From Guillardia theta CCMP2712 (taxonomy: Eukaryota > Protista > Cryptophyta), in contig NW_005434600.1 in assembly GCF_000315625.1 (NCBI RefSeq), forward strand, positions 14,352 to 52,452: DNA of 38,101 nt, given 5' to 3'. The notes under the pieces were generated by a model. That model was given only the letters and a program-made list of their open reading frames with translations, made no database searches and was not told the origin of the DNA. The position numbers were made by a program, and so were the translations under genes. Positions 61 through 26,798 of this stretch are shown piece after piece; position 1 is the stretch's first letter; the number at the start of each line of letters is the position of its first letter.

Positions 61-2823
61 GGAAGGAGTGAAGAAAGAACAAGAATGGAGACGAAGGTTG
101 GCGGCAGGTGGGATCGTCGATGAAACGGAGAAAGAAGGAGAATGAAGGACGGAGAGGTGAGAAAGGGAGGGAGGGAGGAGAGGGAGGGAGGGAGGTAGGG
201 AGGAGAGGGAGGGAGGGAGGGAGGGAGGGAGGGTTTGGTCACATTGATATCCGAGGGAGGTACAAGGTCGCATTTGTTGAGAATGATAACGTTGGCAAAT
301 TCAATCTTGAAGTCTGTTAGCAGAATAGAAATAACGCTCCTGCTCTTGCAACCCTCCTCCTGCATTCTCCAAATTTGTCGCTCCTCGATGTTTTTTGCTC
401 CTCTCGTCTCGGCTTCTTGCTCTCCTCGTCCTCCTCTCCCTCTTCCTCCTCGTCCTCGTCCTCGTCCTCCTCTCCCTCTTCCTCCTGCTCCTGCTTCTGC
501 TCCTACTCCTTCCCCTCCTCCTCCTCCTCTTCCTCTTCCTCACCTGGTCCACGAGAAGATCTGAGAGAGTCCTTTCATCGTCCTCTCCCGTTGCCATTTT
601 CCGGTCTCTGGATGCAGTTGGACAAGAATCAGAAGAAGGGACGGAGGAAGAAGAATGCGAGGGAGGAGGTAGAGAGGAAGGAGGGAGGGGGAGGAGGGAG
701 GAGGGAGGGAGGGAGGAGGGAGGGAAAGGAGGAAGGAGGGAGGGAGGAGGGAGAGGAAGGAGGAGGGGGGAGGTGGGGGGTGAAGGCGGGTGAGGGAAGG
801 CAGAATAAATCTCCCATCACTTGAGTTTTTCCCCGCAGCTAAAATCTTTGGAGAACTGAAACGCATCGACGACAGTGACCTGCAACAACAGAGGGAGGTG
901 AGGACGAAAAGAACACATTGATCACTTGTTAGGTGACAATGCAGTATGAGGAGGGAGGGAGGGAGGGAGGGAGGAGAGAAAAGGGATAAAATATCTCCAA
1001 AGAGGTCAGGGTGAGAAGAGAGTTCCTCACTAGGACAACAGGGCTTGGAAGGAGAATGTCAACAAACAAGAATTTCAACAGACAGCAGTCATGCAGTGGG
1101 GGAGAGATTTGTTGAGTGCCGTCTCAACATACCAAGGTGTCCAATCTTGCGATCTGAGACAGATTACGACCTTCCAAGTCTTGCATCATGAAACTTTGTG
1201 CAACCTGTTCGTTTCATCACCCCAACTAGGAGGAGCGAGACAGTGGACAGCAAAGAGACGGCAAGTCACCGGGAGAGGTTCGGAGATGCCGGTGCTCTCG
1301 ATGAGGAGGTATTGAAAGCGATTCTGCACAGAACTTCATCAGCGCTTTGAGGGAAACGAGTTTGAGCTGTTGGTCATGGAAGAGCGATGAGAAGCATCTC
1401 TCGAGGCAGCCTCTATCTCATCTTCAACTGCATCTGATTCTGATCTGATCTGATCTGATCTGATCTGATCTGATCTGATCTGATCTGATCTGATCTGATC
1501 ACTCCACCACAGCATGCACATGCGCTGTCACTGCTTGCACATGCGCTCTCACCTCAAATGCAATCCTCGACACTTCATGAATCAGATCCTGTTCATCCAT
1601 CAGTAACATTCATGAATCTAGCAGCTCAACACAGTCCATACTTGTCTTAATGTACAGCATATACATCCGTTGCTCAGTTCCACAAGATTTTCTTCAGTCC
1701 TTGTCACGCTCAAATTCGCGTTATCCACAATCCACCCATCAACATTGACGTCTGAAAGAGAACCAGAAAAGTTCGTCAAAGATGTCCAAGACATACAAAT
1801 AGAAAAGTTTGTACAAGACCGGAAAACAAAAAAGATTTAGTCTTTCCCACCTGCCATGTCGTTTACAATCACTGCAACCTTGTACCCAGAGGTGTTTAGA
1901 ATCAGATGCTTCAAAAGGGTTGTCTTTCCGGCCCCAAGAAATCCACTCAAGACTGTCACAGGGAGTTTCCCCCCTCCTGCTCATTGCAAACAGGTCACCG
2001 GGACAAGCTGTGATGTGTCAGCCAACACCTGACTCATCCTTCCTCTTTGTTGGGAGTCCGTTGGAGAGCGAGCGAGACTTTGGGATCGGAGTTGTTATGC
2101 ACAGTTACAACTTCAAAACACAATCACCAAAGAAGGATTCCCTTGGCTGTATCTGCGCATCTCCGCCAAGATCCGATCCCTGTCAGCGCCTTTCTCCATC
2201 TTGGAAACCTCCTCCTCCAGTGCCAGTAGGAGATCGCGATACAACATGCTCTCCCCATCCAGCTCGAGCGCACGCGCAGCAGACATCCATGATGAGAGAA
2301 ACAGATCGTGCACCGAAGAAATGTCTCCTCCTCCTCCTCCTCCTCCTCCTCCTCCTCCTCCTCCTCTCTCCTTCAACCTATCTTGGGTGTCAAGAGAAAA
2401 CATCATCTTCAACGACGCAACACCTCGATCGCGCCAGGTCCAGCAATGCCTGGCTCATGCGGAAATGTCCCTTTGCGAACGCTGGTCTGATCTTCACGCA
2501 CCTCTCTGCATCTTCGAGAGCCTGTTCCGCTCTCTGACAGCAACAACATCTGTCATCATGGAAGAACACAACCAAGTCGTACTCACCTCAAGCTCCACAA
2601 GACATGCAGACCTGTTGGAGAGTAGCTATCGGAGAATGAGAGTCACATAGAACACGATAGATCTTTCTGCCCACCTGAGCCAACAGTTCATCATCAGGTT
2701 CCTTGCTGATTCCCTGCGTGTACGCCTCCAGGGCTCCTTGCAGATCTCCCTTTCGCAGCCTTGCGTTTCCGTTCTCCTGAGTGAAATCAGGACATCACAC
2801 ACTTGTGTTGGACATCTTGTCAT
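1..2823 (-). CDS. Multi-exon TPR-domain + COG0523 (CobW/ZigA/ZNG1-like) G3E GTPase metallochaperone; 5' start uncertain, 3' end runs off the window
   Basis: Hand-spliced minus-strand exons. TPR part: [23 protein letters not shown] (~2700-2780), [12 protein letters not shown] (~2590-2625) and [33 protein letters not shown] (~2435-2535). GTPase part: [32 protein letters not shown] (~1852-1975), [19 protein letters not shown] (~1642-1752), [15 protein letters not shown] (~1268-1312), VTVVDA (~860-878), TLSDLLVDQ (~545-570) and [15 protein letters not shown] (~260-305). GT-AG introns keep the frame. Confidence 0.9.
1434..1500. repeat. (TGATC)n microsatellite in an intron of the COG0523 gene
   Basis: About 13 tandem TGATC units. 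Confidence 0.95.
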
Positions 2824-4479
2824 CTCCAGGGAAGCAGGCGAACGAGGGAGGGCATGGCAGATGAGACAAGAAAGTCGGTGACATCAGGTGGCATCATGAT
2901 TTCAGCTGTTTCTTTCTACACGACATGTCTCCTCTGCTTTCACACGAAGCTCTGAATGCCGTGTGCTTCATCATTCCCTTATCCTCTTGCCGTCCTTTCC
3001 TTTGTGTCTTGAGCGCTTCCCTTATTTTCTTCCCTCCCCTTCCCTTCTTTCGCCTTCCATTGCCTTCTCCACTCTTCTGTTCTCTGGTTGCCTTGCCTTG
3101 CCTTGCCTTGCCTTCTTCCCTCTCCTCCCGCTGCTGTTCTCTACCCTCTGCTCGGATCCACCATGCTCTCTTCGCCCCTCCATCTCCTCACCTTGTATCG
3201 CATCGCCTCCACCAACTCTCCCGCCATCCCGCATCAAGGCCGAATGTCCTGTAGGTGATTTGGGTCGCATTATTTTTCTGTGAAATTTATAGTTTTCCAC
3301 AGTAAAATGAGACTTCAACAATAAAATACAGAGTCTTCTGGATTCTGGTCAGAGCGGGGATGACGACAAAGAAATGAGGGGGATGATGAGTGGGTCATTG
3401 GGGGGAAGAGGGGCCCTTCTTCTCTATTTCGGGCGCCATGTTCGCTGTGTTGTCGCATTTCTCTATGCTCATCGACTGTCCATCGGGCACCATGCCGGAT
3501 CCAACGTGAGGCCTCATCCCCCCCCTCCTCCTCATATCCTGCCTTATGTTTGACCAAGAGATGTTCATGATGGAGCTCGATGGGTGATGGTTCAACACAT
3601 GAATCTGACCCCATCCATCCTGTTGAAAGTGTAGAATACTCAGACATGTTCGACTTAACGTGATTGTTGTTACGCGGTGTGTAAATATGTATTAGATGAG
3701 AGAGGTTCAATTGCAAGATGAGAAAGGTTCAAAAGGCATACAGCATGTAATGAAGTGATCATTGAATTCAAGCCAAGATGAAATGTCAAATTTCGCACAA
3801 TCAGCTCGTGCCCGTCTCCTCCTCAACTACNNNNNNNNNNNNNNNNNNNNNNNNNNNNNNNNNNNNNNNNNNNNNNNNNNNNNNNNNNNNNNNNNNNNNN
3901 NNNNNNNNNNNNNNNNNNNNNNNNNNNNNNNNNNNNNNNNNNNNNNNNNNNNNNNNNNNNNNNNNNNNNNNNNNNNNNNNNNNNNNNNNNNNNNNNNNNN
4001 NNNNNNNNNNNNNNNNNNNNNNNNNNNNNNNNNNNNNNNNNNNNNNNNNNNNNNNNNNNNNNNNNNNNNNNNNNNNNNNNNNNNNNNNNNNNNNNNNACC
4101 TCCGCCAGCTTTTCGTCGTCTCAACCTTTCTGGTGTAGGCACTATCCTTCCTCTCGCTGCGTTCTGCCTTCGGTTGCCAAGATGCTCCAAGGTGAAAGTC
4201 ATTCGAGGAGTGGTTTTTATTCGGCTGAATGTCTTGCCAACAGGAACTGGGGGCTCAGACAGTGCATCTGGTTTTTAGAACCACGACTGTCATATTCTTT
4301 CATTGTACTCGTAGGGTCAGCTCATTCTTCAGGATGGGAATGACGGAACTTGAATTTGTCTAGTTTACTTTGATACAGATCAAAGCACGTTCCCGTATAC
4401 CGTCAAGGGTGGTACAGTGGCACTGGCTGCTCAGAGAACCTGCTGGATCATCATAGCCTAGGGTAATGACCAGGGATAG

Positions 4480-7400
4480 CTATCCTTGGTCAATAGCATC
4501 TGCGGATTCAGGCACTTGTTTTGCTTCGGAGTGGCTCTCCTCCTCCCCGTGCAAAGCAAGGAGGTCACACCCGTCCCTCGTACGAGTCGAAGCCTCACCT
4601 TGTCTGCTGTTCACCCTGGCTCGCTCAGACTTGTCTGACTTGCACTCCGTTCGCAATGAGGGCGAGTCTGATCCCTTGGATGCTCTCCTTCTTTTTGATA
4701 AGCGAACTTCATCCTTTAATGCATCCTGGTGCATCGTCCGCAGACCAAAAGGATTCGTTGAAAGTCCAAGCTCCATCAGAATCAACACTCTGTACCTCTG
4801 AGCTCCCTGTACCACTCTGTGGAAAGTGTGCCAAGGTACGTCATCATTTTTCCTCCAGTGTAACAGCAACCAGCTCTCCTTCCCGCCACGAGGTAAAATC
4901 CGCTCACTCTCGAACTTTCTCAGCTTTGGTGCCATGAAAAACAGCAGGTCGTGCCCATGCCTAGATAACTTCTTCACAATCTTTTTCAGCTGCGATGCAC
5001 TAACCGCCTGTCTCCGGTTCTTGAACTCTGCACCTCCCGATTTTCTACTTCCATCCTGACCGACGGGACTGTAGAAGATTCCGTCCCGTCTCTGACTATT
5101 TTTGCAACGCATGTAGCAGCCGTACGCTGTACTTTCATTTACGTGCTCTTCACCAATGCGAAGGGGAACAAGGTTCGAGAAGCACGAAGTCAAGACTTGA
5201 CGAAATCCCTCTGCAGCTTCTTGATTCTGCACCCTCTCAAGAACGTTCATAACCTTGCTCTTTACCTCCCTTCCGCAATGAAAGCTGAGAGTTGAAAGAA
5301 TGTCGTCAGGATGACTCCAGCTTGTCAACATCACAACAACCCCCCCAAACGATTCCAGCAGGTTCCCGTCCCTTTGCATCGCGTCAACCGCTGTTGGGTC
5401 ATTTGAAGGTCTCGCAGCCTCTTCATGAATCCTCGTCAAGACCGCGAGACACGATCTCTCCTTGAAGGGCTTTCCTCCACCAGCGCTGACTGCCACAGTG
5501 ATGGGATCCAACAAGGAAGAAGCAAACTTGGAGGTCAAATGGTGAATGTCAAGGCCGTGCAGAAGAAGCTTGCCATCATTTGTTTGGCTCATTTCGACGA
5601 TAGACTGTGGACTACCACGTGCAGGGACTTCACCTCCTGGCCAAGCATTCAGGAGACCGAAGCCTTGTAAGATTTGTGTCTGAGACATGGCTTCGTGCGA
5701 TGCAATCTGGAACATAGAATACAAGGATGCGTCGTTGAGATTCTTCTTGTCGGATCGTAGACGCTGCAGAACATGATAAGCTAGGTTACGAAATAAAGTT
5801 GCAGGGTCTTCCACTGATATATCGACGTTCAATCCTTCCAAGAAAACATTGCATAACCATGGGTTCACGTTGTCGAGCAACAATGAGATCTTGCCCTCCC
5901 CAAACAGTCGCTTGAGAAGAATTCTCTGCTTCGCTGATCGTAGCATCATCGGAGGGAGGGCTCGATGGGTGACGCAGATGATGGTCTGCTTGTTCTTGCC
6001 TCGGCTGTCCAACGTCTGTCGCGTAGCTTCATTGAAATTCATCACCAGAGTGTTAGTTCCTAACATGATGCAATGAAAACCCGCATTACGGAGAATTCTT
6101 TTCAGGAAATCAAGTCTGTCCAATGCGCCAACAACACCGAAGCTGCTTTTCTTCTTCTCCCTCGGAATCGCTTCATCAACCATAACCCACAACTTCTGCT
6201 GCGACATCCAGGTCCTTGCTTGCTGCACTGTTACCTTGGCGGGCGTTGTGGTCTTGCCAAACAGATAGCCGAGCGTGCCAAGAACGTTCCAACTGTAGTC
6301 CTCCAGCTTGATCGATGAGATCTCCGTCGACTCACCTGACACGATCTTGAAGACATTGATACTGCGAAAATACTGTTGAAGGTCCAGATCGATAGCTGCA
6401 TTCATGATACACGTCAGGTCTTGTACTCTTGAATAGATTTCCTGTTCGTGGACGTATTCGAACACGAAGTATAGCGAGGTCGTCGGATGTCGAGAAAAGT
6501 AGTCTGCAGCGCACAGAGATTTCCCGCTTCCCGAGCATGCCTCGATCATACATGAAACTGTAACAACATTGTCATTGCTTGCAGCTGCCACTACTCTGTC
6601 GATAGGATTGAGATAGCTGAAATTACTGTTCCTTGGTTCAAGTACATTTTTGAGGTACTCCTTCAAGCCATTAGCTGCATCTTCCAGCGAAAGGCGTGAA
6701 AGGCGAAGCTTCGAAACCAAAGCGCTTAGCACTATCAAACAGCATTCCGTCAGCATCTTTATAAAAAAAACACCCGTTCTCAGACGGGGTTGGACAAAAT
6801 AATAACAGGAAGATTACCTTGGTTGTCCGTAGGAAAAGCTAACGATGCACGATAGCTCGCAAGTTCAGAATTATGGTGGTCCAAATCTTTCTGTGCCTGG
6901 AATATCAGCTCCTCGTCCCCGCTTGCACGTGCCTGTTCCAGCTTCGCCTTCGCCACCTCCACCTCCTCTGCCAGCTTCGCCTTCGCCACCTCCACCTCCC
7001 ACGCTGATATCAGCTCCTCGTCCCTGGTTGCCCGTGCCTGTTCCAGCTTCGCCTTCGCCACCTCCACCTCCCCCGCTGATATCAGCTTCTCGTCCCCGCT
7101 TGCCCGTGCCTGTTCCAGCTTCGCCTTCGCCACCTCCACCTCCCCCGCTGATATCAGCTTCTCGTCCCCGCTTGCACGTGCCTGTTCCAGCTTCGCCTTC
7201 GCCACCTCCAGCTCCCACGCTGATATCAGCTCCTTGTCCCTGGTTGCACGTGCCTGTTCCAGCTTCGCCTTCGCCACCTCCACCTCCTCTGCCAGCTTCG
7301 CCTTCGCCACCTCCACCTCCCCCGCTGATATCAGCTCCTTGTCCCCGCTTGCACGTGCCTGTTCCAGCTTCGCCTTCGCCACCTCCACCTCCCCCGCTGA

Positions 7401-7967
7401 TATCAGCTCCTTGTCCCTGGTTGCACGTGCCTGTTCCAGCTTCGCCTTCGCCACCTCCACCTCCTCTGCCAGCTTCGCCTTCGCCACCTCCACCTCCCCC
7501 GCTGATATCAGCTCCTTGTCCCTGGTTGCACGTGCCTGTTCCAGCTTCGCCTTCGCCACCTCCACCTCCCCCGCTGATATCAGCTCCTTGTCCCTGGTTG
7601 CACGTGCCTGTTCCAGCTTCGCCTTCGCCACCTCCACCTCCCACGCTGATATCAGCTTCTCGTCCCCGCTTGCACGTGCCTGTTCCAGCTTCGCCTTCGC
7701 CGCCTGCAGTTCGCTGTTTGAAGGATTATCTGCCCCTCCTTGTATTCGCAAACAAGAGGGTTGGGAAAGCAAGCCTATCCGACGAAGGTTTGGTTGAGAA
7801 AAGGGAACTGTCAATCTCTGCTGGCAAAACAAACGATCAGCGTCTCTCCTGCGGCAGATTCGGGGCATTCTACCTCTGCGCTTGAAATGACGATTGACCC
7901 CAAACATACCAACACACAACGTGTGTGGGTTGGTATGGCTCCCAAGCGATGGCGATCGATCCCGCAT
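4480..7967 (-). CDS. Helical-repeat + P-loop NTPase + PD-(D/E)XK-like nuclease protein (Crinkler/CR-effector-like), copy A; exons ~7967-6818 and 6731-4480
   Basis: A predicted GT-AG intron (6817-6732) joins the 395-aa repeat ORF in frame to the 758-aa ORF (..PTDNQ/VLSALVSK..). Walker A-like IEACSGSGKS, Walker B VMVDE and C-terminal RRDGIFY..GGAEFKNR are visible. The true start codon is uncertain. Confidence 0.75.
6903..7715 (-). repeat. Coding minisatellite: ten 72-bp units (EVEVAKAKLEQARA[TR/SG]D[KE/EK/EE]LISA[G/W]) plus three 33-bp units (EVEVAKAKLAE)
   Basis: Units counted from the translation of ORF 6780-7967. Confidence 0.95.
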
Positions 7968-8539
7968 GCCTTCTCCCGGTGGTGGAGTATCTTCTTCCCC
8001 TGAAGCAACGGGGTGGTCATGTTAGGATTCACCAAGAGAGCATCCGCAGCAGGTAAGAGCAGTTGAGCGTGATCAGCCTTGCTCTCACTCTACCAAGTGT
8101 TGAAATCGTGATGCGAGAAATATTCAATTCACCCATGATCTTTGTGAAATTTGAATGTGTTATACTAATGTTTAGTCAACCCAATCTCAATCTGAATTCC
8201 TAGCGGTTTTCGCTGCCTCCTCCGTTTCCTAGTGTCTTATTGAGGCGGGTTTGTCGGATTTATCCTCGTCCTCCTATGTTTGCTCCGGTTTGCCTTTTCT
8301 TTTCAGTCAATAAATATAAAAAAGGAATTTATTAATCAATTTTTTATTAATCAATTTTTTTCGTACCGTTACGGAGAAGAAGGGTGCCTTTGGGGAATGT
8401 GAAGAAGTAGAGCAAGATGTAAGGGGGCAGATAGAATCAGTAAGTGGAATCTGTAAGAGATTGGATGGGAAAGAGATTGGATCTGTAAGAGATTGGTCAA
8501 CCCGAAGACCTCCTCTTGGAGTTCTGTAAGCCAACTGAT

Positions 8540-9686
8540 TACTTTGCTGTGTGAGAAGAGAGCATGTTGCTTGTCAGCTTCGGAGTTGAGCACGAAATCG
8601 CAGTCCAACCCCTGAGAAGATCAAGAGTTGCTGGCAAGACGGGGGTTGGTTTCTTTGTACATGAGGAAATGCTCGCACCAGCAAATGTCTTCGTTGCTGA
8701 TAATGAAGCAAAAAGCTACTTGAAGTTTCAGTCAAACATGTCTCTAAGGTCTGGCGTCAGGCATGTTTACAGAAGGAACAACCACTCAAAGACTTTCGGT
8801 GGAAGATTGATACAACCATATATTGGAGTCCTACAAAGGTCTTCATAGATGAGGCGGCAGTAGGTGTCACGAAACTAAGCTCGGGAAAGGATGCAAATCC
8901 GTTGACGGAAGAGAATTACATAGGCATAAGAAGATAGGATCGTGGGCAGCCTGACATATGTCACATTGAGTTGGGATGTCATCTGTAGATCCGTGAATAC
9001 GGTTCAGATCCTGCTGCATGCAACACATCTGATGGCAAGATGATCATATGTTCGTTGGAGTTCCGAGCCTGGAGGATTTGAAACGCAACATTGCAGAAAA
9101 CAACGATTCAGTCGCAGGCATGCTGAAGGAGATTCCGGAGATAGGGCAACATGCGACAGAACACCAGGAACAGGAAGAGGAACCTGACCTCGGAGATGTA
9201 AAAGCTGGCGCACTGCTGAATCGGAGCACTGTACAGTGTGTCAATGGCGATCGAGCTGGCGTTCGTCACACTGTGACTCAGACTGATCAAGCTGATCTGA
9301 AAACGATTCGAATTTCTGGTGAAGCGAAATGTTTCAACAGTGCATGGAATCTGTATCACTCTGGCAAACATGCCAAAGGGATACCTCCTTCGGAGAAACT
9401 GCAACGAGCAAATTTTAACAGAGCATGAAGCAAATGGTTTGCAGGCATAGCTTATCTCATGAAGTGCTTTGACCAATTCATCCGGCGAAGTGTAATGGAA
9501 CTGAATTCCTTCTTTGATAGTCGGTGAGAATCTTTGATGTTTCAAGGCCAAGATGAAACATTCAAGAAATATCCAAAGGATTTCATCTCGTGGCTCAATC
9601 AGAGAGAAGGGGCAGAGAGCTCAAGTGATAGGAGTGGGCAGTTTGCACAGGCAACGTACTTCAAGAAAATGCGAAAGTGTGTTTGA
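8540..9686 (+). pseudogene. Degenerate, internally deleted Crypton-like tyrosine-recombinase transposon ORF
   Basis: Fragments across frames: SLRSGVRHVYRR (~8740), GVTKLSSGKDA (~8865), TYVTLSWDVICRSVNTVQILLH (~8954-9019; resembles the LSWNLMCR..N first catalytic Arg motif of stramenopile Cryptons) and AWNLYHSGKHAKGIPP (~9342-9390). Stops and frameshifts are present; no HxxR/Y region is seen. Confidence 0.6.
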
Positions 9687-9918
9687 GTCTTGGACCTCTG
9701 AGGCGGGTGTGTGAGTGTTTGAGGGTAGGGAGGGAGGGAGGGTGAGGTCCTAAACTGGTCTTTGGGTGGGGTAGGGGTCATATTCGGAAGGAGTTTATGT
9801 GAATTAGCACTAAACCTCTCAAAAAACTACAAAAGTGTATATATTTGTCCGGACTACATCTTATTACACCTCTAAACCTCTAAATTAGTGGTATGGTGCA
9901 CTGACAGAAAAGTTGCAA

Positions 9919-10618
9919 AATTTTAATGATTGACAGTGCAACGTGCAATGTACCGGTACTATCCAGCCCATTGGATCGGCAGGGGTACTGCATTCAATGC
10001 AATCCAGCAGAGCAAATGATGCCATGTTGCAGGAGCGACAACGACGACAAGAAAGGGCATTTGACCTAATAGAGAACAAAGTCATCGCTGATAGTACGAA
10101 GAAAGTTTACCGATGCAAGATCAATAGGATCGTGCGTCTGTTACTGAAAGTGAACCCCAGGGCTGTCGACGAGGACGGCGAATTGATACTCCCAAAGGCA
10201 TGGAAAGATTTGAAGAGTTTGTTTGGAGACCTTGTCACCAATACTGACTTACCAAAATCTAGAAGGAGAAGAGGAGGTCAAGAGCAGGAAGAGCAGGAAG
10301 AGCAGGAAGAGCAGGAAGAGCAGGAAGAGCAGGAAGAGCAGAAAGAGCAGGAAGAGCAGGAAGAGCAGGAAGAGCAGGAAGACGAAGATCAGGATTTTAT
10401 TTTCCCTCAGAAGACGCCGTGCAAAAGTATGTGGCAGAAATGGCACCTAGGGCAAGAGGAGAAGATTAATGGAGAATGGAAGCGTATTGGTCCACTCAAA
10501 GCTTTGCACAATTATTTTGACAAAATAACGTTGTGAATGCAGTACCACCCACTCCTGCCCATCCAATGGGCTGGATAGTACCGGTACATTGCACGTTGCA
10601 CTGTCAATCATTAAAATT
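9919..10618 (+). mobile_element. 700-bp unit bounded by ~80-bp inverted repeats, carrying a deleted Crypton-like ORF (9943/9997-10536)
   Basis: IRs at 9919-9996 and 10534-10618. The ORF has IADSTKKVYRCKINRI..DGELILP..LFG fused through a (QEE)n tract to DFIFPQKTPCKSMWQKWHLG..IGPLKAL. No TSD is visible. Confidence 0.6.
10279..10382 (+). repeat. (GAAGAGCAG)n coding repeat, about 11 units
   Basis: Read directly. Confidence 0.95.
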
Positions 10619-10976
10619 CGCTCAGCTACACGTCGCACCAACATCCGTGGTCGCCCTCTGCGGATAGTGGGGACCTCCGAGTCAGCCTGCACGGGCGGCA
10701 CGGCAACGGCGAGCCGCTGAGCAGTGGAGGCTCTCCTGTTAGTTCAGAGATTGTATCACCCTCTGGTGGTCACAGTGGTGGAGGCCGCCGGGGCGGCAAT
10801 GGTCGAGGGCGTGTAGGGACTGGCCGTTCCCATCGAAATTTCAGACAGACGTGCCAGTATCAGCACTGCCTCTTTGCACACAGCTCCTCCATCCGCATGT
10901 TGAGGAATTGATGGAATGGCTGTTTTCCCACGTTGCTCACACTCACAGCTGGTGTATCCTTCCGAATCAACATATT

Positions 10977-12099
10977 AGGGGGCTTATGGGCGCCAGGGGA
11001 TTAGACCTTAGGATTAGCTCCTGGTACAAATGTTTTAGTCAAAGGGAGGGCTAATCCCCTGCTAAGGTCGCCCAGGGGATTAGCAATTAGTAGCTAATCC
11101 CCTGGACAACCATAACCTTTGGCTTACCAACCGTTGCGAGTTCAAGGTTCTCCCTTCCCCCCGCGCGAGGGACGTTCGAGTCAAACCACCTTCGACCTGA
11201 TGCTCCGAGTGCGCATCAACCTGTGGCTCCTGTATGTCGCGTGCTTCCCATTGTGAGACAAGAGGATTGATGCCTCAGCAGCTAGGGAATGACAAGACCT
11301 TCAAAGTTGAGGGATAGGGTTGGAGGCTTCATGGACCGTGAGGGCAGTGGAAGCGTTTTGAATTCGAAAATGCGATGCGAATGTCAGTGTTCATGGTGAG
11401 GACTCCAATGTTGAACGGTTTTTATGAGGTAAACTTGTATAATGGCAATCAATCAATCAATCATTGGCTTCGCCTCGACGCATGATTGACAAGATTTAGC
11501 AACACAAATGGATACCGCCTTCTCAGGACAGAGTACAACAAGGCAAGCTTCCTATACATCCTGGATTCGTGAAAGAACCGAGTCTGACACCATCACGACG
11601 GATCTGATAGGAAGCGAGTTGAGCTGAGGTGTGTGGGCATCGTTGCTCTGAAGTTTAGCAACAGATATTCAGTACATGTGATGGTTTGTAATGTGCATCT
11701 TAACTTTGTTCCTGTGTTCATTGTAATTAGAACATGAGTAATGTAATTGGACCATGCAACACCTCGTATGCATAGAGCTGTTCTTCATCATGCTTGTACT
11801 TGCTTGCAACATCACCTACAACAGCATAAGCTAACATCTCACACTCCTTGCAAGCGCTCGTTCGGCACAAACATTTCAGTTTCACTACTAATCCAACACT
11901 TCCAAAAACGAAATAAAAAGAGAATAAAACTCTAAAAGTTAAGGTCATGATACAAATTATTGAGTGATTTTAGAAGGAAACTTGATCGCTTTCTTCCTAT
12001 ATCACAACGTCTCAAAATCAGACTAAGGTTAAAACCGCCGTGTAACGGCAAGGACAGCTAATCCTAAGGTCTAAGGTCTCTGGCGCCCATAAGCCCCCT
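10977..12099. mobile_element. Non-autonomous TIR DNA transposon, probably PIF/Harbinger-like
   Basis: Imperfect ~43-bp TIRs AGGGGGCTTATGGGCGCCAG..TTAGACCTTAGGATTAGCT at 10977-11019 and 12056-12099. ATT flanks both sides (10974-10976 and 12100-12102); an alternative reading is a TA TSD with ends at 10978/12098. The internal remnant RVGGFMD (~11317-11337) resembles the Harbinger GFxDG motif. Confidence 0.8.
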
Positions 12100-12874
12100 A
12101 TTTATTCATTCACGCAAAGATGATGGCACATCAGGCTTGCATCTTCAGCATTGATAAGAACTTTTATAAGTAGCATAAATGTTTGTGCTACCCCTACTAA
12201 ACAGTTCAAGTACCCTGGTAAAATCATGCCCTGCTTTCCAAAGGTATTTTAAATTTTCGAAATCTATCTGTTTTAGGGCCCTTTTAGTGCGCCGAAAAAA
12301 TTGATAAGTTAATAAATTCCTTTTTTATATTTATTGACTGAAAAGAAAAGGCAAACCGGAGCAAACATAGGAGGACGAGGATAAATCCGACAAACCCGCC
12401 TCAATAAGACACTAGGAAACGGAGGAGGCAGCGAAAACCGCTAGGAATTCAGATTGAGGTTGGGTTGACTAAACATTAGTACAACACATTCAAATTTCAC
12501 AAAGATCATGGGTGAATTGAATATTTCTCGCACCACGATTTCAACACTTCAAGAAGAGTTTCAAAAGAGTTCACGGCGTGACAAGCAGTAGTAGTTGGGA
12601 GGATTTCACAGTGCTCCCAAGTATTTCAGAGGTGCGAAATCAGAGTCTGGCTATATTTTCAAATCCATGGCCTTTGGTTGGGCGCAATACACAAACTCAC
12701 AAAACATTTTATCAACAAGGTTCTCTTGCACGCGGCAAATGACGGCTGGTAGAGTGAGAGCAAGGCTGATCACGCTCAACTGCTCTTACCTGCTGCGGAT
12801 GCTCTCTTGGTGAATCCTAACATGACCACCCCGTTGCTTCAGGGGAAGAAGATACTCCACCACCGGGAGAAGGC

Positions 12875-15755
12875 ATGCGGGATCGATCGCCATCGCTTGG
12901 GAGCCATACCAACCCACACACGTTGTGTGTTGGTATGTTTGGGGTCAATCGTCATTTCAAGCGCAGAGGTAGAATGCCCCGAATCTGCCGCAGGAGAGAC
13001 GCTGATCGTTTGTTTTGCCAGCAGAGATTGACAGTTCCCTTTTCTCAACCAAACCTTCGTCGGATAGGCTTACTTTCCCAACCCTCTTGTTTGCGAATAC
13101 AAGGAGGGGCAGATAATCCTTCAAACAGCGAACTGCAGGCGGCGAAGGCGAAGCTGGTATCAGCGGGGGAGGTGGAGGTGGCGAAGGCGAAGCAGCGTGG
13201 GAGGTGGAGGTGGCGAAGGCGAAGCTGGAACAGGCACGTGCAACCAGGGACAAGGAGCTGATATCAGCGTGGGAGGTGGAGGTGGCGAAGGCGAAGCTGG
13301 AACAGGCACGTGCAACCAGGGACAAGGAGCTGATATTCCAGGCACAGAAAGATTTGGACCACCATAATTCTGAACTTGCGAGCTATCGTGCATCGTTAGC
13401 TTTTCCTACGGACTACCAAGGTAATCTTCCTGTTATTATTTTGTCCAACCCCGTCTGAGAACGGGTGTTTTTCTTATATAGATGCTGACGGAATGCTGTT
13501 TGATAGTGCTAAGCGCTTTGGTTTCGAAGCTTCGCCTTTCACGCCTTTCGCTGGAAGATGCAGCTAATGGCTTGAAGGAGTACCTCAAAAATGTACTTGA
13601 ACCAAGGAACAGTAATTTCAGCTATCTCAATCCTATCGACAGAGTAGTGGCAGCTGCAAGCAATGACAATGTTGTTACAGTTTCATGTATGATCGAGGCA
13701 TGCTCGGGAAGCGGGAAATCTCTGTGCGCTGCAGACTACTTTTCTCGACATCCGACGACCTCGCTATACTTCGTGTTCGAATACGTCCACGAACAGGAAA
13801 TCTATTCAAGAGTACAAGACCTTACGTGTATCATGAATGCAGCTATCGATCTGGACCTTCAACAGTATTTTCGCAGTATCAATGTCTTCAAGATCGTGTC
13901 AGGTGAGTCGACGGAGATCTCATCGATCAAGCTGGAGGACTACAGTTGGAACGTTCTTGGCACGCTCGGCTATCTGTTTGGCAAGACCACAACGCCCGCC
14001 AAGGTAACAGTGCAGCAAGCAAGGACCTGGATGTCGCAGCAGAAGTTGTGGGTTATGGTTGATGAAGCGATTCCGAGGGAGAAGAAGAAAAGCAGCTTCG
14101 GGGTTGTTGGCGCATTGGACAGACTTGTTTTCCTGAAAAGAATTCTCCGTAATGCGGGTTTTCATTGCATCATGTTAGGAACTAACACTCTGGTGATGAA
14201 TTTCAATGAAGCTACGCGACAGACGTTGGACAGCCGAGGCAAGAACAAGCAGACCATCATCTGCGTCACCCATCGAGCCCTCCCTCCGATGATGCTACGA
14301 TCAGCGAAGCAGAGAATTCTTCTCAAGCGACTGTTTGGGGAGGGCAAGATCTCATTGTTGCTCGACAACGTGAACCCATGGTTATGCAATGTTTTCTTGG
14401 AAGGATTGAACGTCGATATATCAGTGGAAGACCCTGCAACTTTATTTCGTAACCTAGCTTATCATGTTCTGCAGCGTCTACGATCCGACAAGAAGAATCT
14501 CAACGACGCATCCTTGTATTCTATGTTCCAGATTGCATCGCACGAAGCCATGTCTCAGACACAAATCTTACAAGGCTTCGGTCTCCTGAATGCTTGGCCA
14601 GGAGGTGAAGTCCCTGCACGTGGTAGTCCACAGTCTATCGTCGAAATGAGCCAAACAAATGATGGCAAGCTTCTTCTGCACGGCCTTGACATTCACCATT
14701 TGACCTCCAAGTTTGCTTCTTCCTTGTTGGATCCCATCACTGTGGCAGTCAGCGCTGGTGGAGGAAAGCCCTTCAAGGAGAGATCGTGTCTCGCGGTCTT
14801 GACGAGGATTCATGAAGAGGCTGCCAGACCTTCAAATGACCCAACAGCGGTTGACGCGATGCAAAGGGACGGGAACCTGCTGGAATCGTTTGGGGGGGTT
14901 GTTGTGATGTTGACAAGCTGGAGTCATCCTGACGACATACTTTCAACTCTCAGCTTTCATTGCGGAAGGGAGGTAAAGAGCAAGGTTATGAACGTTCTTG
15001 AGAGGGTGCAGAATCAAGAAGCTGCAGAGGGATTTCGTCAAGTCTTGACTTCGTGCTTCTCGAACCTTGTTCCCCTTCGCATTGGTGAAGAGCACGTAAA
15101 TGAAAGTACAGCGTACGGCTGCTACATGCGTTGCAAAAATAGTCAGCGACGGGACGGAATCTTCTACAGTCCCGTCGGTCAGGATGGAAGCAGAAAATCG
15201 GGAGGTGCAGAGTTCAAGAACCGGAGACAGGCGGTTAGTGCATCGCAGCTGAAAAAGATTGTGAAGAAGTTATCTAGGCATGGGCACGACCTGCTGTTTT
15301 TCATGGCACCAAAGCTGAGAAAGTTCGAGAGTGAGCGGATTTTACCTCGTGGCGGGAAGGAGAGCTGGTTGCTGTTACACTGGAGGAAAAATGATGACGT
15401 ACCTTGGCACACTTTCCACAGAGTGGTACAGGGAGCTCAGAGGTACAGAGTGTTGATTCTGATGGAGCTTGGACTTTCAACGAATCCTTTTGGTCTGCGG
15501 ACGATGCACCAGGATGCATTAAAGGATGAAGTTCGCTTATCAAAAAGAAGGAGAGCATCCAAGGGATCAGACTCGCCCTCATTGCGAACGGAGTGCAAGT
15601 CAGACAAGTCTGAGCGAGCCAGGGTGAACAGCAGACAAGGTGAGGCTTCGACTCGTACGAGGGACGGGTGTGACCTCCTTGCTTTGCACGAGGAGGAGAG
15701 ACACTCCGAAGCAAAACAAGTGCCTGAATCCGCAGATGCTATTGACCAAGGATAG
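12875..15755 (+). CDS. NTPase + PD-(D/E)XK-like nuclease protein, copy B; repeat exon contracted and frameshifted (~13192); 757-aa ORF 13482-15755 intact
   Basis: Predicted intron 13421-13506. The ORF differs from copy A only at DRLD/DRLV and HGEEESHS/HEEERHS. The upstream exon is split into ORFs 12875-13261 and 13204-13458. Confidence 0.7.
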
Positions 15756-16132
15756 CTATCCCTGGTCATTACCCTAGGCTATGATGATCCAGCAGGTTCT
15801 CTGAGCAGCCAGTGCCACTGTACCACCCTTGACGGTATACGGGAACGTGCTTTGATCTGTATCAAAGTAAACTAGACAAATTTCCGTCATTCCCATCCTG
15901 AAGAATGAGCTGACCCTACGAGTACAATGAAAGAATATGACAGTCGTGGTTCTAAAAACCAGATGCACTGTCTGAGCCCCCAGTTCCTGTTGGCAAGACA
16001 TTCAGCCGAATAAAAACCACTCCTCGAATGACTTTCACCTTGGAGCATCTTGGCAACCGAAGGCAGAACGCAGCGAGAGGAAGGATAGTGCCTACACCAG
16101 AAAGGTTGAGACGACGAAAAGCTGGCGGAGGT

Positions 16133-16558
16133 GATGTTGCAGGGAGAGGGAGAAGAGGAGGAGGAGCAGCAGGATTAGGGAGAAAAAACGCAGGAGGAGC
16201 GAGGGAGCGGCGTGCGAAGAAGAGCAGGAGCAGGATAAGGGTGCAGCGGAAGAGCAGCAGGAGGGAAAGGAGACCGCGGAAGAGCGGGAGCAGCATGCGG
16301 AGGAGGGAGAGCAAGAGGGAGAGCAGGAGAGGATCAGGAGGAAGAGGAAGAGAAGGAGGAGGATCAGAAGGATGAGTAAGAGAAGGGGGGAGAAGAAGAG
16401 CAGGAGGGGAGGAGGAGGAACAAGGGGGGGGGAGGAACAGCAAGAGGGACAGGAACAGCAGGAGGAGGAAGGGAAAGGAACAGCAGGAGACGGAAGGGGA
16501 AGAGCAGCAGGGAAGGGAAGAGCAGGAGGAGGAGGAGGAGGAGGAGGAGGAGGAGGAG

Positions 16559-16600
<42 letters not shown>

Positions 16601-16761
16601 GCCCAGGACGAGGAGGAGGAAGACGAGGACGAGAACGAGGAGGACGAGGACGAGGAGGACGAGGAGGCCCAGGACGAGGACGAGGAGGACGAGGACGAGG
16701 ACGGGGACGAGTAGGAGGAGGAGGAGGAGGAGTACGAGTATGAGGACGAGGACGAGGTCGG

Positions 16762-16809
<48 letters not shown>

Positions 16810-16920
16810 GCAGGAGGAGGATGAGTAGAAGGAGGAGGATGAGTAGGAATAGGAGGAGAAGGACGAGGACGAGGACGAGGACGAGGAGGACGAGGAGGAG
16901 GATGAGGAGGAGGAGGGGGA
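16133..16920. repeat. Low-complexity (GAG)n/(GAGGAC)n purine tract
   Basis: Read directly. It explains the Ser-, Pro-Arg- and Gly-Arg-rich overlapping ORFs here. Confidence 0.9.
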
Positions 16921-17689
16921 TGAGGCCTCACGTTGGATCCGGCATGGTGCCCGTTCTGGGAGGCTTTCCAACGAGACCCTGTGAAATGGTAACAATCGTT
17001 TAATGAGTAAAGACGCAAGCTATTCCTGGGAAGATGCCGGGGAAGCCGAACGCAACAACTTGCCGACGGCAAAGGCCTTGAAGCCTCGGCCTCGGAGGGA
17101 GGCAGAGGGGCACTGCCGGATGGAGGAGCTGTGTGCAAAGAGGCAGTGCTGATACTGGCACGTCTGTCTGAAATTTCGGGAGGGAATTTGAATGTGTTGT
17201 ACTAATAGGAGTCACATAGTAGTGTGAGCAGCTGTCACGAGGCCGCACGGTTCCGGGGTCACTAAGATCAAACCCGCGTAACTTCAACCTGAAGGGTCAA
17301 CCGAGATCACGGCACGGGCACGGCTGCCACCCCATGACACCCCCGACAGCTTCTTCCGACCTCCCTACGGCTACAAAATGACGTCTTCTCGAACACCCTT
17401 GGACTTAGCGGAGTAACGAAAAGCATTGTTTTCAGGTTTGAGGATATTTACTACAACTGACTTTGTAAGCCTTCGTATCCGCTGACCGGGCAGCACCACC
17501 AACCTCTCGTGGTAAAAGGTGCTTCACAGCACCGGTACATGTATCAGGAATTGGAAAGATTCAGGGGGTGGTTTTTCAGTAGTCGCTTCTTCATGCTCCC
17601 AGGGGTGGGTCTTCTCCGGAATCCGCTCCCGATTTGTTGATTCCGCACCCCTAGTAATCCCATAAGATATCGACGGGGGTAGGGTCAGG

Positions 17690-19230: not shown

Positions 19231-21026
19231 TAGGGCGCCTCCAAAAAAAGCTTAGGATTCTCTTTTTTGGTAAAATTTGAAAAAAAAAAAATTGCAGTTG
19301 ATGGACACATTTATCGCGAAACATGCATAGTTTCAGTACCTTGCACGCATTGTTGGCGTGATCGTTTGAAATGCCTAAGGTTCAAAACTCTGGTACTAAT
19401 TTGTACCGGCGATCAGTACTGATAATTGAGTAAATTACATATATATGCGGTACACTTATTTGTACCAGTTACTCTCTTTAATATTAATATATATAGAATT
19501 CTCTCCTTTTTTTTTGACTTAGTGAAAGAATCTTGAAGCGCCCTGCGAGATCCAGTCCTTGTATCAGGCCGCGCCTCACGGCAGTGCCGTTCTTCAACGG
19601 GATCGGATACCGTACCGATGCCCCCACGCGGCCCATCATCCGATCCAGAGTCGTCAGTCTGGTACCCCTCCTCCGAGGCTTTATCAGTGAAGGTAGGGTA
19701 CTCGAGGGTACTTCCGGGCCCCGCAGCCTGTTCAATTCGTTCGGTGTCCGACCGCAATGCTCAAATTGTATGGAAAAGTCAATCAAAAATTAAAATTCTG
19801 TCTAAATCTCATTGGGTTAACCAGCGAAACTGACATCTGCCAGGGCCCCCTTTCGCTGGATCCCCCGTTATAGCCGCCTCGGTGTAAAGGCCTTGGCCCC
19901 CCGTTCCGCAATCAGTTGGCGATTCCGCGAGCAACACTTATTTTGCACTCGAAAATCTGCCATGGATTATTGAAAATAGACAATAAATTTTCAAATTGTA
20001 CCTTTCTTTTTCATATCATTCGTTTGAATTTGCGACCATTATCCCCGCCAACATTTACAACCCCTCAGATTTCCCTGCCTTTGTATGTAATTTACTACGC
20101 CTGGTACCATATGAAGGGAATTTGAGTAATTTTTGTATTGGCACCATCCACCCCCACCCCGCCTCCAATCAATCCACCCTCTTCTCAAAATTACTCACTA
20201 TTTACCCCACCCTACCCCACCGTGATATTCACACCGATCCTTTTTCTCCCATGACAGCTCTGACCCCTACCTTATCGATGATCCCACCACCCCTGAACGA
20301 ATACCCACCCACCCATCGTAATCAGACGGTTCAACTGAGAAACGAGTTCTTCTCCACCCTACCCACCAGGATCCCAATTGCAACAAATACCCTACTGTCA
20401 CTTTCGACTCGATTACCTCTCAAAACCATGGGTAGTATCACTACCTACCGTCTAACGACACATTCGAACTCCCTGCTGCCACCCCACCCCTCCACATGAA
20501 AAGGATATAGACTGACTCTGAATACCCCACCCCATCCCCACCCTTTGCACCCCCTCGTCATCCCTTGCACTGTAGCCCAGTTCAGGGTACCCCCACCCAC
20601 GATGATCCACTTCACCCACCCACATTGTGTAAAACACGATACTCCACCCCCCTTTCAGTAAGTACCCCCCACCCCACCCCCGAGCTCAACCCCGTCAAAC
20701 GTGGCTTTTCCCCAGTTTGTGTCCCCCGAAAGTATCAGCGACTGCTTCCTTCCCACCCGCATCTCTGCCCTCCCACTTCATCCGCCGCTTCCTCCCCCTC
20801 CTCGCTCTTTCTTCTTCTCATTCACTTCTGATCATCCCCTCCGATTCGTCAGGCTTTCATCCCACCTCATCTCATTTCTTTCTCACAGCCCAACTCTCTT
20901 TCATTGGTCGTTCATCTCAAATTGTTCTGGACCAGGGGTGTCTAGTTTAACGACCTGTGCTGTGACGGTTGATATCGCATTGGGATTTGTCTTCTACAGA
21001 AACAAGTCTTGATAGCAAGCAACCTG

Positions 21027-21968
21027 ATGAGTCGTGAGAGAATGGTAGAGTTTGTGGCGGGCGCTGCGTCGGGATTTGTTGCAGACGGTGTAACGCACCC
21101 TGTGGACACTGTTCGAACAAGATTGTGGGTTCAAGGGGAAGGGACAGCTTACAGGTATTCTGGATTGCTTCATGGAACAGTAGACATGGTGAAGAAAGAG
21201 GGATTGCCCTCGCTCTTCAAAGGTTTCGGAAGCGTCGCATTGCTGACTCCTTTAGCGCATGGTCTTTACTTTGGATCATATGAATGGTTCAAGCGAACAC
21301 TAGGACACCGGAAAGGCGGCCTAGGCCTCGGAGACTCCTCCAACGCTATGATCTCAGGATTCTTTGCGAATGGAGTCGGAGGTCTGGTGTGGAATCCGAT
21401 GGACGTGGTGAAGCAGAAGCAACAAGCCAACGTCGGCAGCTTGTACAAAAGTCCATTGAATGGGCTCGTTGAGGTTTGGAGGGAGGGAGGCATGTGCCGG
21501 GGTTTGATGAAAGGATATTGGTCGGGAATGGCAACATATGGGCCATTTTCAGCTATTTACTTCATGATGTACGAGAACTGGAAAGTAGCATGCATGAAAT
21601 GGACTACGCAGCATGCGCGGCACGACGAGCTTAACACAGGACACTACGTAGCAGGAGGATTCATAGCTGGGAGTGCTGCAGCTGTTGCGACAGCTCCAAT
21701 CGATCTGATCAAGACGAGGATACAAGTTTGCGATCATTACTCAGGAATGTACTCCACCGCAACACGCATAATCAAGGAAGAAGGCTACGGAGTTTTCACC
21801 AAAGGACTTGGAGCAAGGATATTGTGGGTAGCTCCAGGTTGTGCGATCACCATTGCAGTGTTTGAAGACATTCGAAAGTTTTGTTCGAGTGCCTCAGACT
21901 TCGGTAGTGATGGTTACTCTAGCCTGGACATGTCGTCTGTTACAGATGGATCAGCTTTCACAGTATGA
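21027..21968 (+). CDS. Mitochondrial carrier family (SLC25) protein, intronless
   Basis: Three Px[DE]xx[KR]x[RK] signatures (PVDTVRTR, PMDVVKQK, PIDLIKTR), the KEG..LFKG and EEG..FTKG motifs, and ~313 aa. Substrate not assigned. Confidence 0.95.
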   Translation: MSRERMVEFVAGAASGFVADGVTHPVDTVRTRLWVQGEGTAYRYSGLLHGTVDMVKKEGLPSLFKGFGSVALLTPLAHGLYFGSYEWFKRTLGHRKGGLGLGDSSNAMISGFFANGVGGLVWNPMDVVKQKQQANVGSLYKSPLNGLVEVWREGGMCRGLMKGYWSGMATYGPFSAIYFMMYENWKVACMKWTTQHARHDELNTGHYVAGGFIAGSAAAVATAPIDLIKTRIQVCDHYSGMYSTATRIIKEEGYGVFTKGLGARILWVAPGCAITIAVFEDIRKFCSSASDFGSDGYSSLDMSSVTDGSAFTV

Positions 21969-25756: not shown

Positions 25757-26798
25757 GTGATTGAGATGATGATGAAAATGGCGATGAAGAAGCAGAAAAA
25801 GAAGAAGATGCTGATGATTATGATGATGCTGGAGAAGAAGATGAAGAAGATGCTGATGATGATGGAGATGATGATGATGATGGTCATGAAATTTATCTTT
25901 CTGTCTCGTTTGATTTTCGTCTCACTTTGAATCCAGGGAAAGACGAGCCCACAAGACGCAGCCATTCAACGTTACCACCAGATGTGCCGAGATCAGTTTG
26001 GCGAGAATGCAGAGTTTGATGGAGTGAGCAGGTGAAGAATTTTTAATGCTCTCCTCTTCTCCACTTTGCTCTCCTCTCCTCTCTCCTCTCCTCTCCTCTC
26101 CTCTCCTCTCTAAGTTCCCCTCTTCTGTTCTCTTCCCTTGTTCTTCCCCTCCCCCCCCCCCCCCCCTCCTCTACCCAGCCCTCCCCGTCCTTTCACTCTC
26201 CTTGGCTCCTCTTTCCTATTCCTGGGCTGGGCAGTCACGACCTCTACTCAAACAAGAGAGAAGTTCCCCCTACAGTCCGGGGAAAAAGGGGTTTGAAGAG
26301 AAAATGGATCCCCGGACCCCGGAAGAAGAGCNNNNNNNNNNNNNNNNNNNNNNNNNNNNNNNNNNNNNNNNNNNNNNNNNNNNNNNNNNNNNNNNNNNNN
26401 NNNNNNNNNNNNNNNNNNNNNNNNNNNNNNNCACGTCATTTCTCTCTCCACCCCCTCTTCCCACAGTCTTTCACTCCTCCGGCAGGCTCTCTGCAAGCAG
26501 CACTTCGGGGAGGGCGCAGAGTTCGATGGAGCGGACGGCTGCCGCTGCCGCAGGCATGTTACCCAACACCTCCCCTCCTCCCATTTCTCCCTGCACCTCC
26601 CACCCTATTCCACGTGCAATGTTGTTCCTGCTCCTTCCTCTTCTCCTCCTTAGCTTGCCCCAACGGATTTTCTTGTGTCCTCAACCTATTTCTTCGTGTC
26701 CTGGTGAGCATCTGATAGTTCCCTGCAGCGGATACCGCAATGTCAAGGGCAAGTGTGTGCCTGGAGGAGAAGGAGCCAAAGCCTTCGGCCTCTCATAG
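23754..26798 (+). CDS. Multi-exon secreted protein: signal peptide, Gly/Gln/Ala-rich region, at least four Cys-rich EGF-like repeats
   Basis: N-terminus MMGRCIALWLILSLVFCLSSA. Spliced repeats: LMCQKQHGPGA/EFDGVDSCRCKEGYEEVDGKC, VLCKKEF/GQGAEFDGKDSCRCAQGFANR/GGAC, QMCRDQFGENAEFDGVS.. and LCKQHFGEGAEFDGADGCRCRS/GYRNVKGKC. An N gap lies inside the gene. Confidence 0.8.
25697..25885. repeat. (GAT)n microsatellite, intronic
   Basis: Read directly. Confidence 0.95.

Follow-up and report, generated by a model that had tools for sequence, protein, structure and literature searches.

A Crypton terminus marks both inner breakpoints of a probable young inverted duplication of a putative NTPase-nuclease gene in the Guillardia theta nuclear genome

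How did two nearly identical genes come to lie in mirror image, transcribed away from each other across a few kilobases of repeats, in the nuclear genome of a cryptophyte alga? The locus that raises this question lies in a window of 38,101 nucleotides (G000:C74:14352-52452; the window is the whole stretch of DNA that was analyzed, and positions given without a contig label refer to it) of the Guillardia theta assembly, which comprises 87.1 Mb in 669 contigs and from which the other contig labels used here (C1, C180, C342 and so on) are also taken. The best named protein relatives come from Guillardia theta CCMP2712 (GUITHDRAFT proteins) and from Hanusia phi. An initial annotation, made from the sequence of the window, had described inverted, near-identical arms with outward-facing genes around a spacer built mostly of transposon pieces, and had read the whole either as a composite mobile unit or as an effector/defense island kept by recombination between its arms. 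We consider it somewhat more probable than not that the locus is a young inverted segmental duplication, or palindrome, of an NTPase-nuclease gene that belongs to a family expanded in cryptophytes, and that a Crypton transposon served as its pivot.

When the left arm was compared by blastn with the reverse complement of the right, three blocks were returned: 4098-6966 against 16132-13272 (99.2% identity over 2869 nt), 7505-8095 against 13336-12747 (96.8%), and 8095-8335 against 12549-12309 (98.8%). Read by eye, the homology extends to about 8363 on the left and about 12306 on the right. The genes are transcribed outward, the left from the minus strand and the right from the plus strand. The inverted arms of the initial annotation are therefore real, and the single-nucleotide polymorphisms (SNPs) and indels that it had seen between them include eight substitutions and a codon indel in the enzyme exon, a 197-nt indel, and a difference in repeat number. 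The difference in repeat number amounts to about 10 copies of a 72-nt unit. The 197-nt indel (12550-12746) is a segment assembled in the right arm only; since it is partly shared with a related gene copy on C180, the left arm must have lost it. The duplicated unit would consist of one gene with about 0.6 kb of upstream and about 1.2 kb of downstream sequence. Upstream of both gene copies there is also a 112-nt short dispersed repeat (12330-12443, with its left-arm counterpart at about 8201-8314), of which the genome holds more than 35 copies at 88-93% identity.

Within the 2.3-kb enzyme exon, the left and right copies are separated by six synonymous and two non-synonymous changes and by one in-frame codon indel, corresponding to a divergence of about 0.35%. 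Six or more synonymous changes among eight would arise by chance under neutrality with a binomial P of about 0.004, assuming about 25% synonymous sites. With the C180 copy as outgroup, six substitutions are derived in the right arm and five in the left. We take the arms to be true paralogs, that is, real evolutionary copies, because their differences are mostly synonymous and are split between both lineages. Two mis-scaffolded alleles of a single locus are excluded, as each arm has neighbors of its own on its inner side and on its outer side, and a fold-back cloning artifact is excluded by the substitutions on both lineages, the arm-specific indel and the separate flanks.

By the same comparison the arms appear to be young. 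An alternative holds that they are older than they look, and that a palindrome of conflict genes has been kept uniform by arm-to-arm gene conversion, as in the ampliconic palindromes of sex chromosomes. Conversion would account for an enzyme exon and 3' region that are 99.6-100% alike between the arms, although the spacer has gathered at least three nested insertions and an inversion, and for the clustering of SNPs beside the repeat array of the gene. Each arm nevertheless carries private derived substitutions along the whole gene, the 197-nt indel and a frameshift in the right copy persist un-homogenized, and simple youth accounts for the identity of the arms. We judge this alternative unlikely; conversion need not be invoked, because the arms seem young and each has its own derived substitutions.

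A genome search with 8336-12308 resolved the 3.9-kb spacer (about 8364-12305) into a mosaic of nested dispersed repeats, in agreement with its initial description as mostly transposon pieces. The accompanying phrase, a core of tyrosine-recombinase remnants, is accurate for about 0.8 kb, the share of one Crypton that lacks its catalytic domain, and not for the remainder, which belongs to three other repeat families. Of the recombinase, the window copy retains only an N-terminal stretch of some 130 residues and a short piece of the C-terminal part (residues from about 17-147 and 148-189), next to its own 5' region in inverted orientation. The assignment to Cryptons is made because full-length relatives of this 3.4-kb family carry the expected motifs and have Crypton-related feature neighbors: the copy on C342 has, by eye, a core-binding-type N-terminus, a CRSE arginine box, and HSFRKG and DRY motifs, and its feature neighbors (NDC10_II, Phage_integrase, and DUF3504) are all Crypton-related families. 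A search of the whole genome with Pfam PF00589 gave no match, a result that is uninformative since the full-length Crypton copies also fail to score. In the C342 element (L028, G000:C342:9500-16500, positions 1444-4600 of that segment) the recombinase occupies two long adjoining open reading frames (ORFs), 1701-3080 and 3093-4502, so that either an intron or a frameshift must separate its arginine box from its H-x-x-R box; the element also contains a long EEQ repeat whose length differs between copies.

Four full-length Cryptons with unrelated flanks define the 5' terminus of the element. Its exact terminal 24-mer occurs five times in the genome, in these four copies and once at the present locus, with no occurrence in a reversed control; here it directly abuts the right arm and points away from the gene. 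The otherwise exact terminus on this side is interrupted by an 11-nt GC-palindromic insertion, TTTTAGGGCCC (plus strand, 12271-12281). On the left, a 16-nt tandem duplication is followed by a short remnant of the same terminus, with which the arm ends; next comes a dispersed repeat, here called repeat A. Both inner breakpoints of the palindrome thus coincide with the Crypton 5' terminus. When up to two mismatches were allowed genome-wide, the terminus was found beside a member of the NTPase-nuclease family at the present locus only, the remaining occurrences being the four full-length elements.

We propose that a single ancestral gene had a Crypton about 570 bp upstream and that an inverted copy would have been made with this element at the pivot, whether by a replication template switch, by fold-back at the element, or by recombination at its end. 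The center would then have decayed through insertions, deletions, and one inversion. If the stretch that begins at the left boundary and ends halfway through repeat A were inverted, an intact A would be restored beside the right arm; one later inversion would therefore explain why this repeat is split. The inverted part of A is in turn interrupted by a 1130-bp element (element C), copies of which lie on C77, C29, C16, and C278; its empty site was seen as a 1130-nt skip in contigs of two public sequencing runs, with 4 nt shared at the joint. A Pfam search with the ORFs of repeat A returned nothing.

At the outer boundaries the picture is more complicated. The initial annotation had drawn the arms out to 3484 and 16953, and the outermost 52 nt at these positions do match in inverted orientation (98%, E 1e-21), but the parts of the arms that lie between these ends and the aligned blocks are non-homologous as assembled, consisting on the left of a 295-nt segment copied from C1 and an assembly gap of 267 N, and on the right of 769 nt of GAG/GAC low-complexity sequence. 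Because the left homology starts exactly where the gap ends (4098), the outer part of the left arm is connected to the rest only by scaffolding. The stop codon of the left gene (4480) precedes the gap by 382 nt, and no real reading frame crosses the gap, the ORFs listed across it being artifacts of translating N; it probably hides low-complexity DNA resembling that at 16133-16901. The 295-nt segment has just one other copy in the genome, C1:491152-491446, where it forms the last codons and the downstream region of an unannotated 244-codon ORF; having no third copy, the segment resembles a templated insertion made at the outer junction. In the right flank, 62 nt (17117-17178) exactly duplicate, in inverted orientation, the sequence at a breakpoint in the spacer (10834-10895). 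Together with the C1 piece, this inverted copy would fit a template-switching event, although neither is proof of one.

These boundaries also bear on the earlier suggestion of a composite mobile unit, according to which the full 13.5 kb would move as a composite or fold-back element, its arms serving as terminal inverted repeats of great length. Such an element would be in keeping with the long inverted arms, with the transposon material at the center, and with the sharply defined outer ends. As the initial annotation had itself noted, however, there is no target-site duplication at 3484/16953, where the flanking sequences (gtccat before the left end, ttctgg after the right end) have nothing in common. 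In the 87-Mb assembly there is also no second copy of the unit, of its 52-nt outer end, or of its inner upstream region: searches of the genome with the arm, the inner upstream region, and the outer end recovered only the present locus and the gene body on C180, and this sole close relative (93%) shares the gene body alone. Nor does the locus hold an intact transposase or recombinase, its Crypton being without the catalytic domain. We therefore regard a mobile unit as very improbable and the palindrome as a duplication that presumably does not transpose.

The duplicated gene carries an enzyme ORF of 757/758 codons in each arm (4480-6756, minus strand; 13482-15755, plus strand), preceded by an exon of tandem repeats that we call the header. 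The two parts would be joined across an 86-nt intron, as indicated by sequence alignment with the annotated paralog GUITHDRAFT_113579, in which the same repeats are fused to the enzyme part and in which SDTAVLDAISLKY aligns with the predicted spliced junction TDNQ-VLSALVSKL. Spliced in this way, the left copy has an intact coding sequence of 1133 aa. In the right copy, a non-triplet deletion in the repeat array breaks the frame: the frame that begins with ATG runs into a stop at 13261, and the one leading to the splice donor opens at 13117 and lacks an ATG. In its assembled form, the right copy is predicted to be incapable of making the full protein, which suggests that the left copy is the working gene and that the right copy recently lost its header frame.

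In an alignment of 14 relatives, the conserved residues of the protein include Walker A (GSGKS) and Walker B (hhhhDE) motifs as well as a C-terminal E468...D558...E577-x-K579. An E...D...E-x-K pattern is typical of PD-(D/E)xK nucleases. The full-length structural model was mediocre, with a predicted local distance difference test score (pLDDT) of 62; in a Foldseek search its N-terminal 350-500 residues matched STAND/AAA+ proteins (CED-4, MalT, ORC/Cdc6, and PAB2304) with E from 4e-4 to 5e-3, the CED-4, MalT, and ORC matches (E 4e-4 to 1e-3, prob 0.96-1.0) having template modeling (TM) scores of only 0.2-0.3 on this model. Weak AAA_22 matches were found in distant relatives. The C-terminal 246 residues modeled alone reached a pLDDT of 89, and when this model was compared with about 48,000 PDB representatives using VIA, the top rows were mostly restriction-fold nucleases with Z of 5.0-5.5 (PaqCI, AF1548, AspBHI, LlaBIII, HamA, Card1, BspD6I, Cap4, NgoMIV, Can2, MspJI, LmuA, and FokI); Foldseek with the same domain returned nothing at E <= 0.001. 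The nearest structure in the ESM Atlas was that of a 676-aa oomycete cluster (TM 0.49/0.54), and language-model features placed the protein near oomycete and fungal clusters, some of which have a Crinkler header (score 0.92). From these models and motifs, the protein is probably a 24-residue helical repeat header followed by a STAND-like P-loop NTPase and a PD-(D/E)xK-type nuclease. By analogy of architecture, its most likely role would be that of a nucleoside triphosphate (NTP)-switched nuclease in conflict or immunity. The initial label of an effector/defense island is accordingly plausible at the level of protein architecture, that is, a STAND-like NTPase with a restriction-endonuclease-fold nuclease in a lineage-expanded family, and at that level only.

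The family is narrow: a search of 1.8 billion representatives yielded 65 clusters, and relatives occur in Guillardia and Hanusia. In the present genome it is strongly amplified, to no fewer than 20 loci, some of which form tandem arrays (C155, C281, and C15). The C180 paralog is a 93% copy with an internal deletion. In the arrays (G000:C155:100500-122700, C281, and C15:396000-431000) the paralogs are arranged head to tail at about 68% nucleotide identity and follow one another at intervals of about 7.5-7.9 kb (2.2 kb at the C155 end); every paralog has its own header exon of 33/39-nt repeats. Some array copies are followed, about 0.7 kb downstream, by short gene fragments in inverted orientation, and Pfam found nothing in the ORFs of the array unit.

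Several observations weigh against a Crypton-pivoted duplication of an NTPase-nuclease gene as we have described it. The role of the Crypton is argued from its position; had the element inserted earlier, and had its homology later been lost in a different way from each arm, the result would be indistinguishable. Sequence searches with the protein against Pfam, PADLOC, NCBIfam, and the PDB were silent, and the Z values of the nuclease-fold matches fall below the reliability mark of the tool. In a 6% sample of one RNA run, almost no reads fell on 12300-13699. The long-range order of the locus derives from a 2012-era Sanger assembly; the repeats of the spacer share 95-99% identity with copies elsewhere, by which an assembler could be misled, and the outer part of the left arm crosses a gap and holds the unexpected C1-derived segment. 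The public DNA runs consist of short contigs and the single raw-read run is RNA; among them, no read or contig spans an arm together with the spacer, and none covers more than about 0.5 kb here.

These last points would also be expected if two copies of the gene exist in the genome without being linked head to head, the palindrome having been created by a misjoin through the spacer repeats or across the gap, at which the left-arm homology begins exactly and which the foreign C1 piece adjoins. Against such an artifact, a single gap-free contig (4098-26331) contains both arms together with the spacer, and the separate contig to the left of the gap independently carries the 52-nt outer end in the orientation that a palindrome predicts. 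The same Crypton terminus at both inner boundaries is not expected from a chance misjoin, the differences between the arms are evolutionary rather than sequencing errors, and the version that invokes two alleles fails on the different neighbors of each arm. Three junction-bearing contigs are found in the public runs: one from run X1 crosses the right inner junction, one from run X4, which is independent, includes the 197-nt segment of the right arm with both of its borders, and one from run X11 has the left-type junction (7877-8230). On balance we think an assembly artifact improbable, and continue to favor a genuine inverted duplication.

Two further observations were made in the public runs. 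Run X11 is a freshwater metagenome (2023), and its contigs on 7700-13699 are 99-100% identical to the locus of this marine alga; contamination, a laboratory spike-in, or a close relative could be the source. A contig that joins 12496 to 10834, with CCCTCC between them, was considered as evidence of an alternative arrangement and rejected: it derives from the right flank, and the joint is misleading because 17117-17178 is the exact reverse complement of 10834-10895.

The coordinates of all features are collected in Table 1. The flanking genes are those named by the initial annotation, a cobW/COG0523 gene on the left and a mitochondrial carrier (SLC25) gene on the right. A second gap, of 100 N (26332-26431), lies inside the window and outside the duplication.

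Table 1 Features of the palindromic locus and its flanks, in window coordinates.
Feature	Position	Strand	Basis or remark
cobW/COG0523 gene, first exon	1849-1962	-	Left flank
Left outer end	3484-3535		52-nt reverse complement of 16902-16953, 98%, E 1e-21
C1-derived segment	3536-3830	+	98% over 295 nt to C1:491152-491446; between outer repeat and gap; resembles a templated insertion
Assembly gap, 267 N, length estimated	3831-4097		Left-arm homology to right arm begins at its right edge (4098)
Left arm of inverted duplication	4098-8363	-	blastn blocks; boundary by eye
Left gene exon 2 (predicted P-loop NTPase, Walker A GSGKS, and C-terminal PD-(D/E)xK-type nuclease; stop codon included)	4480-6731	-	ORF, motifs, folds, splice acceptor 6733-6732
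Left gene intron, inferred, 86 nt, GT..AG	6732-6817	-	Alignment with annotated paralog GUITHDRAFT_113579
Left gene exon 1 (repeat header)	6818-7967	-	About 13 tandem 72-nt (24-aa) and 33-nt helical repeats; array 6830-7771
Crypton 5' terminus remnant, about 14 nt	8350-8363	+	Comparison with four full-length termini; 16-nt tandem duplication before it
Repeat A, 3' part (2.5-kb dispersed repeat, at least 5 copies, 94-99%)	8365-9876	+	Genome search; contigs of other copies diverge at 8370
Crypton-type element, internally deleted, partly inverted	9891-10618	+	Recombinase ORF pieces 9943-10536; 10501-10618 is inverted 5' region
Repeat D fragment, copies on C19 and C40	10619-10894		Last 62 nt recur inverted at 17117-17178
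Repeat A, 5' part, inverted, in two pieces (10895-10976 and 12103-12248)	10895-12248	-	Split by 1130-bp element
Element C, 1130 bp, about 44-nt terminal inverted repeats	10973-12102		Inserted in inverted part of repeat A
Crypton 5' terminus against right arm	12247-12305	-	Exact 24-mer at 12282-12305
Right arm of inverted duplication	12306-16132	+	blastn; public-run contigs 12219-12359 (X1), 12503-12966 (X4)
Right gene exon 1	12875-13420	+	About 3 repeat units, reading frame broken inside array
Right gene intron, inferred, 86 nt	13421-13506	+	Alignment with GUITHDRAFT_113579
Right gene exon 2 (predicted NTPase and nuclease), open	13507-15755	+	ORF, comparison with left copy
GAG/GAC low-complexity tract, 769 nt	16133-16901		Right arm only, as assembled
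Right outer end	16902-16953		52-nt inverted match to 3484-3535
Mito_carr (mitochondrial carrier, SLC25) gene	21009-21968	+	Right flank

Taken by itself, the locus is most likely a young inverted duplication of a fairly ordinary sort, situated in intergenic DNA that is rich in repeats and made up of kinds of thing that are already known; the new point is the Crypton terminus at both inner breakpoints. It offers a clean, datable example of a protist enlarging a family of putative NTP-switched nucleases, in which the same protein layout is seen that serves bacterial immune systems and Crinkler effectors. A long shot, which we raise as speculation, is that Crypton ends may drive the amplification of NTPase-nuclease conflict genes in cryptophytes. 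Where such an end lies a short way upstream of a gene of this kind, recombination or replication fold-back there would copy the gene, in inverted form as here or in tandem as elsewhere in the genome, and the end could serve an immune-type gene family repeatedly as the pivot of its duplications. Were Crypton ends and these genes found to be associated throughout the genome, a tyrosine-recombinase transposon would be connected with the origin of conflict-gene arrays.

Among known proteins, the Crinklers offer one comparison. Their C-termini include 'NTPase + HTH + REase' modules (HTH, helix-turn-helix; REase, restriction endonuclease), according to Zhang et al. 2016 as summarized in PMC5289972. 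The predicted protein of the present locus is similar in having a P-loop NTPase, a helical linker, and a restriction-endonuclease-fold nuclease in that order, and both belong to eukaryotic, lineage-expanded, multi-copy families. The ubiquitin-like (Ubl) header of Crinklers (PF20147) was absent at E <= 0.01 in a Pfam scan of the 395-aa exon-1 ORF and the enzyme ORFs, the N-terminus of the G. theta protein being instead a 24-residue helical tandem repeat, and the host is a free-living alga in which nothing among these results suggests secretion of the protein. Profile searches of 1.8 and 5.8 billion proteins, and a further walk from a profile of distant relatives, led to no named Crinkler (CRN); all the proteins that they recovered were unnamed ones from protists and environmental samples.

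Prokaryotic STAND NTPase-nuclease immune proteins, such as Avs4 with its Mrr-like nuclease, likewise join a STAND/AAA_22-like NTPase to a PD-(D/E)xK nuclease. HamA (Hachiman), LmuA (Lamassu), Cap4 (CBASS), Card1, and Avs4 are among the structural neighbors of the C-terminal domain, at Z of only 4-5.5. Unlike Avs4, the present protein has the reverse domain order, is without a sensor repeat region, and matches no PADLOC model.

As for the transposon at the center, full-length members of the spacer family resemble other Cryptons in encoding a recombinase with R..H-x-x-R..Y-type motifs, whereas the copy in the window is internally deleted, partly inverted, and without the catalytic domain. The locus as a whole is comparable to the ampliconic palindromes of Y and X chromosomes and to inverted duplications that arise by fold-back or template switching, in that the arms are more than 99% identical, the spacer is not duplicated, and each arm holds a gene of a multi-copy family. 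Small templated or foreign pieces at the junctions (here 3536-3830, and 10834-10895 with 17117-17178) are a further likeness to inverted segmental duplications. Large genomic palindromes differ from the present locus, whose arms are only 4-5 kb long, whose spacer is transposon debris, and whose inner boundaries both carry a transposon terminus.

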